A stretch of 64,000 nucleotides of DNA from Macrostomum lignano (Eukaryota). Numbering within the stretch: position 1 is the stretch's first letter; each line of letters starts with the position of its first letter. The position numbers and the translations under genes are program-made. The notes beneath the pieces were generated by a model that saw only the letters and a program-made list of their open reading frames with translations, ran no database searches and was not told where the DNA came from. The stretch lies in assembly GCA_002269645.1 (NCBI GenBank), contig NIVC01001797.1, positions 1 through 64,000 on the forward strand. The letters are read 5' to 3'. Positions 38,907-55,118 of this stretch are shown here, piece after piece.

Positions 38907-41900
38907 CTAACGGCGCTGCCTTCTGTCGCGCCTATAGAACAATAGGCAAGCGTCCCTAGTCAGCATGTGGACCGCCTTCGGCACCACCTTAGTCTCGGCC
39001 AGCCGGCTCGGGTCCAGCCAAGGGTCCAGGCGGCCCAGGTCGGTGACCTCGGGAACAGCGAAGCCGAATGTCGCAGCTGTGGGAGCAGACAGAACGACAA
39101 TAAGTTCAGTGATCTGCATGGCTACCACTCCTGAATTCAATTGGGCCGACAATCACTGGCTAGCTATCTTTTACAAATTCCTGACGTTATTCCGCTAACC
39201 GCTAAGCACACACACCCGATTACACAGGGTGTTACAGCGGCCCTGACTTGCTCATCATCATACAGAAATCGAACTGAGGGACTTGGCTGCGCGAGTTATC
39301 AGTATTAAATTAGCTATATGTAATTACTTTTACAACTGAAACTTACACACCTGACTCGAGGCTTCTATAGAAGATTGCCGGGACATTCCGATTCCTCCCT
39401 GATTAATTCCCTTATTTCCCAAGCCAATTAGGTGAATCCGAGGTGCAGTCAGCCGAGAGCCGGGGGAGTATTCAGGCAGTCAGTCACCTGCTGCTTACGG
39501 GAGGTCCTCACTGCAGTTCGGCAGTTCCAATAGGCCGAACAAAGGCTCAAAGAATGTCTGATTAGAGCTACAGACAGAAAAACATACACACCCGGGAGCT
39601 CAAGGTAGGAAGGTAGGCCCGTTCCCCATCTGCAGTCTATGCCCATCTCCGTCCGGGGAAATTTCTAGAATACTTCCGATTTCAGGGAACAAAATCCCGC
39701 ACTACCCCCAATGGAAAAGCAACACAATAGGAATGAATAGTCAGAATAAGGATAATGGCAGTCAGTCAGACTCTCTCCGACTCTTCATGCTCTGCTTTTG
39801 TTCGCTTTTTCCCCCATTTTTCCGCCTGACATCCCGAGCTATAGGTTAGACAGATATCTAAGCTTGGAAAGGACTGACGACTCTATGAATTTGAATTGGA
39901 AATTGAAATAGATGACGATTTATGACACACAGAGCAGTCTCAGGATCTGCTAATGCAATTAATCAATGGCCTTCAGTTGCACCACTGTCACGGGGTTTCA
40001 AGCAATAACGAGCAAGCGTCTTTGATTGGGATTTGTAGAGTAAGAATATTTTTGCTATAAAATAATTGATGATTTATGTAGCTTTCGTATGACCGTCTGC
40101 AGTTCGGACCCAGAAATTATTGATAAATGGATTTAGAATGGAGTACATGTACTTGTAGGATTCACATGAAGTGACCTTGAGAAAATGGTTCGATCGTTTC
40201 TTTAGAGGCTTTTGACGTGCTATTGGCTGTGTGGCGAATTTCTAGTAACTTCTTCATTCAGTTGATCTGCCTTCGTCTCTGTTTACTCTGTTTACTCTCC
40301 CTCTGTCCAGTTCAGTCTTGTTATTCATATCTCTCTCCCTCTCTGCCTTCTGATTGGCTCTTCAATCTGACCTCTATCCTCAGTTGCGCACTCCACCCCT
40401 CCCTTTTCTTATCTTCATGTACGCTTAACCCCCCCCCCAATAATTGAATGTCTTATATAAATATGAGTACACTCATTTTGGGGGCCTTGCGCCCTGCTTA
40501 CTGTTTTTTCACTTCCAATTAATCTTTTACAGTTTAAAATAGCTAGTACACTAAATAGTTCATTACTTTATCTTAGTCTTCTGTACCGGCAGTCACGTGA
40601 CAACTTTTTCCGATATCCAAGTTGGTCTGCGCTTCCAAAATGAATGGCGTGACTTCAAATCAGTCAAGCAAGGAAGAGAATTCCCCGGGTTGTAAAGTCT
40701 AGTCTATTGTCTAAAAATAGCTTCTGGATCTGGTTTCGCGTGACTCGTATCAATGGTCTAAACAAGGACTACTTAAGTAGATACGTTACTTTAGTCGTCC
40801 TTGGGTCTAAAAATAGAAATTTTTTGAACGGCCCAGCCAATCATCGCCGAGATAGTGTATACAAAGATGTTAAAAGCATAAGGCGAGAATCCCCAAAAAA
40901 CATAAATTTGTAATGTGGGAATACCTGGCTTTAAAATAAGACGAGTTTTCTTGTTAAAAAATATTAACTAAAGTGAAGAGTTCCTAGTTTAAAAATAGCA
41001 ACAGGCGGGAATCCTAAAGTTAAAAATAGAAAAGCTAGACTGCACTCACATCCACACTCGGCCATGCTGTTGAACAGCAGCCACCGGCCTTGCTGCGGCC
41101 AGCGGAGCAGGCAGACGTACCGGTCCCGGTGCCGGCAGACGGCCGCCCACAGCCGCATTTGGCTGGCTGTGGAGGCTGTGGAAACTCGAGGTCCGGCACC
41201 AGCCGCAAATCGGCGCTCAACTTCATTGGAATAGCTGATCTCTGATGCTGCGTGATCGTTGTCGCTGGAGTGGGCCTGGGGATTTATGTGCTTTGTGAGT
41301 TCATCTCACCTGACCTCTGCAGATACCATAGAGATCTCATCTCACCCGACCTCTGCAGATACCATAGAGATCGCATCTCACATGACCTCTGCAAATACCA
41401 TAGAGATCGCATCTCACCTCACCTCTGCAAATACCATAGAGATCGCATCTCACCTGACCTCTGCAGATACCATAAAGATCTCATCTCACATGACCTCTGC
41501 AGATACCATAAAGATCTCATCTCACATGACCTCTGCAGATACCAAAGAGATCTCATCTCACCTGACCTCTGAAAATACCAAAGAGATCTCATCTCACCTG
41601 ACCTCTGCAAATACCAAAGAGATCTCATCTCACCTGACCTCTGCAAATACCAAAGAGATCCCATCTCACCTGCACTCCGCAAAAGCAGTCGCGGCAGAAA
41701 GCAAAGCCGTTCACTCTGCAGCTGTTCGCCGCGGCCAGGCAGCGGCGGCACTCCAGCCGGGCCAGCCGGCCGCAGACGGTGCAAGGCCTCGGCCAGCCAG
41801 CCAGCAGCCGGGAGATGTCTATGGCCGGAAGTGGCACGGTGTCCGGCTCGGTCTGCAGCACCAGGCTGATTGGCGGCCGGGCAAAGGAGCCGGGCGGCAG

Positions 41901-53900: not shown

Positions 53901-55118
53901 CCAAGCCATCAAGCCGCCGTCCCATCCCCAGACACGCAGGAATTTCCGAGCCCAATTGCCAGTCTGTATAGGAAAATATAATTTAACCCCAGGGAAGATA
54001 CACAGCATATAAAGTGGCATTTTAGCATTCAAGCATAGCATAGCTTAACAGCAAGGAGGGTGGCGGAGGAGAATGAGATCATCATGTTTTTAATCTGCCT
54101 TCAAGTCCCTGGCTCTTGCCGCGTCCGCTATATAATCGTAAGTGCGTAGCTTAAGTGGCGCCGTTAAAAGTACGGCTGCAAAATACTGGGCCGTGGATTT
54201 TTAACAAAAATGCACACGCTCTTCCAAAATGTCCCGTTCCACTAAACATCCGAAATACCCCCACTAAACATTTGAAACACCCCCGCATTAAACATCCGAA
54301 ATACCCCACACTAAACGTCCGAAATACCCCACACCAAACATCCGAAATACCCCACAATAAACATCCGAAATACCCCACACTAAACATCCGAAATACCCCA
54401 CAATAAACGTCCGAAATACCCACACCAAACATCCGAAATACCCCACAATAAACACCCGAAATACCCCACAATAAACATCCGAAATACCCCACACTAAACA
54501 CCCGAAATACCCACACTAAACACCCGAAATGACCCACACTCACTCCCTGAGATCCGCCACGATCTCTCTGCGCAGGCAGTTCTGAATCGCGCAGAATTTC
54601 TCAGGGTCGCCCGGCCGCCGCGGCCGCTCCAGCAGAGGCCGGTAGGGCGAGCCGGGCAGGGCGAACATGGCCACCAGCAGGGCGTCCAGAAACGACGAGT
54701 CCGTGTGGCCCTGAATGCCCCGACCGCGGCCGGTGACCGGCATAGGCCAGTCCTCCTCATCGTCGTAGTCTTCGTCATCAGTGGCATCGTCGTCCTCGAC
54801 ATCGCTGGAGCAGCGGTCGCCGTCCTGCTGGCTGGTCGGCGGCCAACTTGCCGACGGTGCAGCCTGCACTACCGGAAAAGCCGCGGCCCCGGCACTGGCC
54901 GTGGAAGCGACAGGCGGGAAGCTTTTGCCGCCAGTAGAGCGCATCTGCACAAAGTGCAGCGGATTCTCCAGCGTTCGCAGGGGCCGCTGCAGCGGGTTGG
55001 TCGGGTTCAGGGTAGTGTACTTGTACATGGCCGCCTCTCGCTCCGAGATCACCTCCGTGTGGCTGACTGGCGAGCGTTGGCCGTCGCCCAGCGTCACCAG
55101 CGTGTATTTGGTTGCCAT
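38907..55118 (-). CDS. CYLD-like USP-fold protein, ~490 aa, 5 exons, no CAP-Gly domains, catalytic residues replaced (predicted pseudo-DUB)
   Basis: Exons 55118-54544, 46109-46018, 42064-41670, 41290 (or 41275)-41050, 39076-38907 join in frame. Blocks RGIQGHTDSSFLDALL, KVLKLRRYL..DPGLCLELL, PRPCTVCGRLARLECRRC..FCRDC, MRLWAAVCRHRDRYV..WLLFNSMA and FGFAVPEV..LTRDACLLFY are colinear with human CYLD USP/B-box. Confidence 0.88.
41301..41669. repeat. 36-bp minisatellite filling intron 3 of the CYLD-like gene
   Basis: Unit CATCTCACCTGACCTCTGCAGATACCATAGAGATCT, about 10 copies. Confidence 0.92.
42138..42385. repeat. ~31-bp minisatellite
   Basis: Unit TGTACTCAACGACCCTGAGCAGGGAAGGGTC. Confidence 0.88.
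43257..43703. repeat. (GATA)n microsatellite, ~110 units
   Basis: Read directly. Confidence 0.97.
44010..45302 (+). mobile_element. hAT/Charlie-like MITE carrying a ~1.1-kb GA-rich tandem array
   Basis: Left end CAGTGGGTCGGCAAACTTTTT..AAGAGCCA. Right subterminal GGGCCGCAAGTGGCCCGCGG with an eroded terminus. GCTTAAGG at 44002-44009 and 45303-45310 (8-bp TSD). Confidence 0.6.
46200..47945. repeat. Two related 18-bp arrays (46200-46440 and 47030-47945)
   Basis: Unit CACTCCAAACACCCACCT and variants. Confidence 0.9.
48655..49745 (+). repeat. Dispersed ~140-bp head followed by a 22-bp minisatellite (CTACACGTCACTGCATACAGCA)n
   Basis: Head GAGGGCGGGATGCGACTGGGAAATTGCTGG..TGCACCTCTCCAC is shared with 53127-53260. 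Confidence 0.9.
50880..51047 (-). mobile_element. Helitron-like 5' end
   Basis: Minus strand reads TCTTCTATTCTATATATCTAAGCTGTATCTGTCTGTCTG..AAAACGGCTCAACCGATTTTCACCA. Confidence 0.45.
51176..51300 (+). mobile_element. tRNA-derived SINE head with a CORE-like domain
   Basis: A-box TGGCCTAGTGG, B-box GGTTCGATTCT, then GTGTCCTTGAGCAAGAGACACTTAACCC resembling the CORE-SINE motif (GTGACCTTGGGCAAGTCACTTAACC); no clean cloverleaf. Confidence 0.7.
51945..52680. repeat. ~50-bp minisatellite with an internal (CT)n
   Basis: Unit CTCTGCCCCTCTCACTGCCTCACTCAGACTGTGACTGCCTCACTCTCTCT. Confidence 0.92.
53127..53835 (+). repeat. Second copy of the dispersed head followed by a different 22-bp minisatellite (CCCACAGGCACTGCATACAGCA)n
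   Basis: Same head as 48660-48800; the array shares the CTGCATACAGCA core. Confidence 0.9.
54240..54538. repeat. 23-bp minisatellite abutting the intron-1 donor of the CYLD-like gene
   Basis: Unit AAACATCCGAAATACCCCACACT. Confidence 0.9.

Follow-up and report, generated by a model that had tools for sequence, protein, structure and literature searches.

A CYLD-like gene of Macrostomum lignano with substituted catalytic residues as a candidate pseudo-deubiquitinase

Introduction

CYLD, a deubiquitinase (DUB) with a USP-type catalytic domain, is a central editor of K63 and M1 ubiquitin chains in TNF, TRAF and TAK1 signalling. In the human protein, the B-box dimerises the USP domain, which becomes monomeric upon the I790D substitution; it also stabilises the complex with SPATA2 and is dispensable for catalysis (PMC5031558). 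In planarians, cyld-1 acts as an inhibitor in the TAK1/MKK/p38 infection response and controls infection-induced tissue degeneration (PMC4993586). Pseudo-DUBs form an established class, with some 13% of DUBs regarded as inactive (PMC10919355). Inferring inactivity from sequence alone is nevertheless risky, because USP53 and USP54, formerly listed as pseudo-DUBs, have since proved active (PMC12037411). The gene described here lies on the minus strand of a 64,000-nucleotide stretch of the flatworm Macrostomum lignano (contig NIVC01001797.1, positions 1 to 64,000, assembly GCA_002269645.1), hereafter the window, and was put forward in an original prediction, made from the sequence alone, as a CYLD-like pseudo-deubiquitinase. 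The analysis indicates that it is probably a real protein-coding gene descended from CYLD, which would now encode a pseudo-DUB with a selected non-catalytic role, most likely that of a protein-protein interaction module.

Gene structure and relationship to CYLD

The comparison set, retrieved with a profile of the window product and human CYLD, consisted of 120 CYLD homologues; vertebrates, insects, mites, a cnidarian and an annelid are among the sources. A hidden Markov model (HMM) of the family was built from these sequences and run on every six-frame open segment of the 64-kb window. Its matches were five minus-strand segments and no others (54543-55133, 46013-46201, 41628-42095, 40967-41305 and 38910-39152). 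The resulting gene model comprises five GT-AG-bounded exons spanning 38907-55118, the same span as in the original prediction, and each exon is detected by the family HMM or by tblastn (Table 1). Once joined, the exons amount to 1458 nt, or 485 codons with no internal stop; all four introns are of the GT-AG type (eight canonical splice dinucleotides), with the phases demanded by the CYLD alignment. The predicted five exons in frame across 16 kb were thereby borne out.

Exon 1 encodes 127 acidic, low-complexity N-terminal residues, followed by the start of the USP domain with a degenerate Cys box; for residues 1-127, no homologue was found by HMMER among 1.84 billion representative proteins. 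Exon 2 was matched in tblastn by seven canonical CYLDs, eleven CYLDs having been used as queries. It was also found alone by the family HMM, and its inclusion lifts the family-HMM score of the spliced product from 149 to 184 bits. The first model had instead used 52767-52907 as exon 2, an open stretch that HMMER joined to human CYLD. This candidate was rejected: it offers no usable donor in the phase needed by exon 3 and could be spliced in only via a GC donor, as a 141-nt cassette or with a hydrophobic extension of 36 residues, models that contain it reach 149 bits as against 184 with 46018-46109, and the family HMM does not detect it alone. The stretch itself (minus strand) is open over its 141 nt within intron 1, with AG/GT flanks in matching phase and a weak HMMER alignment to the CYLD helix region (IMQIRYFM, LLSTLFHFF); it is probably due to chance, though it may instead represent a cassette exon or a relic.

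Against the PDB, the spliced product matches CYLD chains only, with human 2VHF aligned at E = 2.7e-28 (101.9 bits, residues 129-451 against 6-335). Single-exon translations, compared with solved structures, likewise match the USP domain of CYLD (human 2VHF; zebrafish 3WXE/F/G). At columns conserved in at least 95% of the CYLD family, the window protein retains 55 of 100 residues, and the CYLD motifs GIQGH, EIV..LR, W..F.SMA and a C-terminal motif of the D..Y..Y type are recognisable. Seven of the eight invariant Cys columns are retained, the sole loss being the catalytic Cys, and 36 of the 43 invariant hydrophobic columns are still hydrophobic. Furthermore, the CxxC...CxxC...CxxC zinc-ligand pattern of the B-box, encoded in exon 3, is intact, with all six family-invariant B-box Cys columns kept; Val stands where human CYLD has Ile790, which belongs to the B-box dimer interface. 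A CYLD-type USP domain with an inserted B-box was thus recovered, together with the B-box-like Cys pattern described in the original prediction. Judged by homology and by its B-box, the gene belongs to the CYLD subfamily, yet its sequence indicates that it is not a CYLD enzyme.

Substitution of the catalytic residues

Human CYLD residue numbers correspond to the chain index of PDB 2VHF plus 582 (HMMER alignment). Three minus-strand motifs named in the original prediction, GHTDSSFLD, RHRDRYV and LFNSMA, were found opposite Cys601, His871 and Asp889, respectively, in the alignment to 2VHF. The Cys601 column holds Cys in 117 of 118 CYLD homologues, the exception being an engineered crystallisation mutant, and Ser in the window protein. 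The His871 column is His in all 120 homologues and Arg in the window protein, while the Asp889 column is Asp in 119 of 120 and Asn in the window protein; the natural CYLD P0053, from Cyclestheria hislopi, likewise carries Asn there. The third residue of the USP triad may be either Asp or Asn, and because USPs tolerate both, the Asp889 substitution is neither inactivating nor diagnostic alone. The claim that all three catalytic residues are replaced therefore stands for Cys and His, which are lost, but is overstated for the change of Asp to Asn. The change of Cys to Ser together with that of His to Arg should inactivate the USP, and with the nucleophile, the general base and the oxyanion-region Asn all gone, cysteine-protease activity is very unlikely. 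Sequencing error was rejected as the cause of the substitutions: the Ser (TCG) and Arg (CGG) codons are each two positions away from Cys and His codons, and they lie in different exons.

Divergence extends beyond the triad to DPEEF, TSHYV, FFDSMADR and the MPRFGK loop, which we take to line the ubiquitin cleft. In exon 3, DPEEF is degenerate (DPGLCLE) and a 9-residue deletion removes most of the QMPRFGKxxK segment. Conservation is lost ahead of the His box, in a stretch 7 residues longer than in CYLDs, and FFDSMADR has become LFNSMAEC. The Pfam USP profile PF00443 (UCH), carried by most of the canonical CYLDs compared, does not match the window protein even at E = 10. In addition, no CAP-Gly domain was found by Pfam in the product, nor anywhere in the window by a family HMM that includes the CAP-Gly region. 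The product thus combines homology to a DUB fold with missing essential catalytic residues, the two features that define a pseudo-DUB at the sequence level.

Maintenance of the reading frame

Several features of the locus bear on whether the gene has been maintained. The off-frames of exon 1 contain 4 stops each, as against none in the coding frame. At this base composition, the probability of finding no stop is about 5e-6, and none of 2000 shuffles remained open, both values having been computed on an earlier 499-codon model. If point mutations accumulated neutrally, the three triad codons would all be hit, and no nonsense codon created, with a joint probability of at most 1.5e-4, a figure that leaves indels and splice-site loss out of account. 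GC content at third codon positions (GC3) is 0.80, and exon GC of 0.62-0.71, compared with 0.42-0.50 in introns, changes in sharp steps at most exon edges. The window also contains exons of the mitochondrial Rho GTPase Miro (30029-33221, plus strand), with EF_assoc and Ras domains and a GC3 of 0.64-0.75.

The window protein is 25-33% identical to all CYLDs (median 30%), whereas cnidarian, annelid, arthropod and vertebrate CYLDs share 39-60% identity with one another. Such low identity implies that many substitutions accumulated without breaking the frame. By comparison, a Miro exon located 8 kb away is about 51% (45-55%) identical to non-flatworm Miro, the other phyla being 56-65% identical among themselves. 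Accelerated evolution is specific to the CYLD-like gene, with no comparable rate increase in the neighbouring Miro gene. That frame and splice sites have stayed intact at such deep divergence argues for selection on a non-catalytic protein, in line with the selection proposed in the original prediction.

The competing explanation most directly concerned by these data is that the locus is an unprocessed pseudogene, a dead CYLD duplicate or orthologue still open by chance, in which the lost catalytic residues reflect decay and not adaptation. Such decay would fit the loss of those residues, the alteration of many family-invariant polar residues and introns swollen by minisatellites. Several further observations weigh against a maintained gene with the proposed role. 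GC-rich DNA has fewer chance stop codons, neither AATAAA nor ATTAAA occurs within 500 nt downstream of the stop, and in the collections searched no orthologue or paralogue of the window protein and no transcript of the locus were found. Moreover, the excess of retained hydrophobic over polar invariant positions is only suggestive (Fisher p = 0.07), only one of the two invariant His columns of the B-box is kept, the other being Gln with a His and an extra Cys two residues away, and it is by analogy with human CYLD that a dimerisation or scaffold role is proposed. The missing orthologues and transcripts are uninformative, however, and were not counted against the gene, because the searched collections lacked the source organism and its close relatives. 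A decaying copy is also difficult to reconcile with 485 codons free of stops and frameshifts, eight canonical splice-site dinucleotides and the very many substitutions implied by about 30% family identity. The small neutral probability of losing the three triad codons without a nonsense mutation, with indels still uncounted, tells against it as well, as do the persistence of high GC3 with sharp exon/intron GC steps and the selective retention of the B-box cysteines. On this balance, a pseudogene is considered unlikely.

The searches for relatives took several forms. A word-indexed homologue search with the full product gave no matches, probably because low-complexity matches filled the candidate list and the product shares little beyond the word GIQGH with CYLDs. 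The profile of the product and human CYLD returned the 120 canonical CYLDs and no close relative, and a HMMER search with exon 1 against the 1.84 billion representatives yielded only canonical CYLD Cys-box matches. Exact-sequence look-ups gave no record of the exon-1 open reading frame or of two other open reading frames of the window, and a metagenome scan found no relative. Within the 64-kb window, the family HMM found no second CYLD-like segment. The original prediction knew of no described pseudo-CYLD; likewise, a limited keyword search of the literature found no description of an inactive CYLD paralogue. As a separate observation, a public protein of 978 aa (P0121) appears by eye to consist of N-terminal repeat modules and one and a half CYLD USP domains, with GIQGY in place of GIQGH.

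Functional interpretation

According to the model favoured here, the 485-residue product would keep a CYLD-type USP fold and an inserted zinc-binding B-box while having lost the nucleophile Cys, the general-base His, the oxyanion-region Asn, much of the ubiquitin-cleft sequence and all CAP-Gly domains. It would consequently be unable to hydrolyse ubiquitin chains, and selection would keep it for a non-catalytic role. The B-box would mediate the formation of homodimers, or of heterodimers with active CYLD or its partners, a proposal made because the B-box of human CYLD is a dimerisation element and the window protein retains a B-box. Such pairing would modulate CYLD-regulated signalling, in flatworms via TRAF/TAK1/p38; TAK1/MKK/p38 is the natural pathway to examine, since planarian cyld-1 acts as an inhibitor there. 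More tentatively, and with a probability well short of even, the gene could represent the first pseudo-deubiquitinase of the CYLD subfamily, an anciently retained flatworm paralogue without CAP-Gly domains whose B-box joins it to active CYLD or to CYLD partners, much as JAMM pseudo-DUBs pair with their active counterparts, and which thereby tunes innate-immune and regeneration signalling of the TRAF/TAK1/p38 type.

Three other functions have to be weighed against this proposal. The original prediction envisaged a binder of K63/M1 chains, and a dead ubiquitin-chain reader or decoy, binding and shielding such chains via the S1/S1' sites of CYLD, would be consistent with the apparent retention of the USP fold, with the conserved GIQGH, LD, YV and W..F.SMA motifs, and with the fact that Cys-to-Ser and Cys-to-Ala mutants of CYLD bind diubiquitin well enough for crystals to be obtained (PDB 3WXE/F/G). 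However, the distal site of CYLD is already "selectively weakened", and specificity needs the CYLD-specific beta12-beta13 loop together with a truncated beta6-beta7 loop (PMC5135002). The window protein lacks the MPRFGKxxK segment and has an unconserved stretch, lengthened by 7 inserted residues, ahead of the His box. Each of DPEEF, TSHYV and FFDSMADR is changed, and the CAP-Gly domains, which reportedly boost the affinity of CYLD for ubiquitin chains (PMC10919355), are absent. These changes render the chain-binder claim doubtful, and a reader or decoy appears decidedly improbable; by analogy with human CYLD, a dimerisation or scaffold role is more likely than that of a high-affinity ubiquitin-chain reader.

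Residual hydrolysis by a non-canonical mechanism, for instance with a Ser nucleophile or with other residues, might be entertained on the grounds that Ser occupies the nucleophile position and that some annotated pseudo-DUBs proved active, with USP53/USP54 and USP52 having been reconsidered (PMC12037411; PMC10919355). This is the most improbable of the functions considered: Arg has taken the place of the general-base His and Asp that of the oxyanion-region Asn, the His box offers no His that could compensate, the cleft motifs are degenerate, and the protein is not matched by the general Pfam USP model. Alternatively, the gene could be the sole CYLD orthologue of its lineage, surviving without catalysis and CAP-Gly domains on the known non-catalytic adaptor function of CYLD. 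The lack of a second CYLD-like segment in the 64-kb window points in this direction, as does the finding that CYLD without catalytic activity can act as an adaptor and so rescue defective TNF signalling in mouse cells (PMC10919355). That role, however, depends on the CAP-Gly and TRAF2-binding regions, neither of which the window protein has, and planarians possess a conventional cyld-1 (PMC4993586), so flatworms in general keep CYLD. There is accordingly only a slight chance that this explanation holds, and a pseudo-DUB kept as an interaction module continues to be preferred.

Genomic surroundings

The positions of the exons, of the degenerate catalytic motifs and of the intron 3 minisatellite are collected in Table 1. 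Minisatellites pack introns of the window, starting at or very near the 5' splice site; in addition to that of intron 3, they occupy 54240-54540, 51939-52653, 30980-31332, 31903-32785 and 33368-34283. The repeat in intron 1 of the CYLD-like gene begins right at the donor, and those of the Miro gene begin 15-170 nt past the donors. In intron 2, TAGA is repeated about 113 times in a near-perfect microsatellite (43255-43704), which is flanked by a 1.1-kb purine-rich 14-bp repeat (44103-45196).

Table 1. Coordinates of the exons, degenerate catalytic motifs and intron 3 repeat of the CYLD-like gene
Feature	Positions	Strand	Description
Exon 1	54544-55118	-	ATG at 55118; donor GGGA/GTGAGT, phase 2; family HMM E = 5e-14
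Exon 2	46018-46109	-	92 nt, encodes ANFVPAGKVLKLRRYLGSLDSAPDLKSGEV; acceptor cccgcag/G, donor GTCG/GTGAGT
Exon 3	41670-42064	-	Central USP domain and B-box
Exon 4	41050-41275	-	End of B-box (His ligands) and degenerate His and Asp boxes
Exon 5	38907-39076	-	C-terminal USP strands; TAG stop at 38907-38909
Cys-box remnant GHTDSSFLD	54684-54710	-	Cys601 to Ser (codon TCG); preceding oxyanion-region Asn to Asp
His-box remnant RHRDRYV	41114-41134	-	His871 to Arg (codon CGG); CIETSHYV to CRHRDRYV
Asp-box remnant LFNSMA	41060-41077	-	Asp889 to Asn
Intron 3 minisatellite	41301-41683	-	10.6 copies of a 36-bp unit, nearly the whole intron; unit with donor-like CAG/GTGAGA and acceptor-like TTTGCAG

Upstream of the CYLD-like ATG, at a distance of about 250 nt, a tRNA-like stretch or one resembling a short interspersed nuclear element lies at approximately 55330-55410, with a T-arm-like GGCTCGATTCC on the plus strand. 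ARAGORN reported no transfer RNA (tRNA) at this position, and Rfam and tRNA scans of the window gave no matches. A two-exon glutaredoxin gene with a CPFC active site (Pfam PF00462) is located on the same strand as the CYLD-like gene (minus, approximately 56030-56810) and ends about 0.9 kb upstream of its ATG. For the Miro exon, the best matches are neodermatan flatworms (Schistosoma 59%, Schistocephalus 58% and Rodentolepis 56% identity), which are 72-78% identical to one another. This pattern points to a platyhelminth outside Neodermata as the probable source of the window.

Elsewhere in the window, a THAP domain and a P-element-transposase-like helix-turn-helix domain occur in adjacent open segments (4318-6221, plus strand), in what looks like a remnant or a domesticated copy of a THAP9/P-element-type transposon. 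What appears to be a single gene at 7356-8417 (minus strand) has exons for an EF-hand and for a dynein light chain type 1 domain (E = 2.5e-16). Furthermore, the open segments 2737-3746 and 13838-14525, both on the plus strand, resemble paralogues by eye (VQALLLLLGYYEKR versus IKAILLMLGFYEGR) and may stem from a local gene duplication; Pfam gave no match in either.

Comparison with known systems

A natural inactive CYLD fold that keeps the B-box and has neither CAP-Gly domains nor cleft motifs would reveal catalysis-independent functions such as dimerisation, partner binding and localisation, and the window gene could reveal a regulator of CYLD in flatworms. The value of the example is limited by its being one gene in one species, and lineage-specific pseudoenzymes are common.

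Among known systems, CYLD itself (PDB 2VHF, 3WXE) is the sole PDB family match, and it shares with the window protein the insertion point and CxxC spacing of the B-box, as well as a short fingers region. The window protein differs in carrying Ser, Arg and Asn at the triad and Asp for the oxyanion-region Asn, in its 9-residue deletion and degenerate DPEEF, and in the absence of CAP-Gly domains and of recognisable N-terminal homology at an overall identity of 25-33%. USP39/Sad1 and PAN2/USP52 likewise combine a USP fold without catalytic residues with intact genes and scaffold or other non-DUB roles (PMC10919355). Those proteins, however, are ancient and widely conserved with known partners, whereas the window gene belongs to the CYLD subfamily and has no known orthologue or partner.

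The JAMM pseudo-DUB partners, for example RPN8, CSN6 and Abraxas-type subunits, offer a mechanistic analogy only: the active DUB is scaffolded or activated by an inactive paralogue with which it forms a dimer. Their fold is a different one, and a heterodimer of the window protein with active CYLD is hypothetical, being suggested by the retained B-box. The nearest conceptual parallel is OTULINL/FAM105A, a dead paralogue of OTULIN, the M1-chain DUB in NF-kB-type signalling, in which the catalytic residues were lost and the gene was kept (PMC5135002; PMC7862380). In contrast to the window protein, OTULINL/FAM105A has an OTU fold and is a vertebrate gene, and no sequence relationship connects the two; what they would have in common is the retention of a gene for a DUB-derived protein beyond the loss of its catalytic residues.

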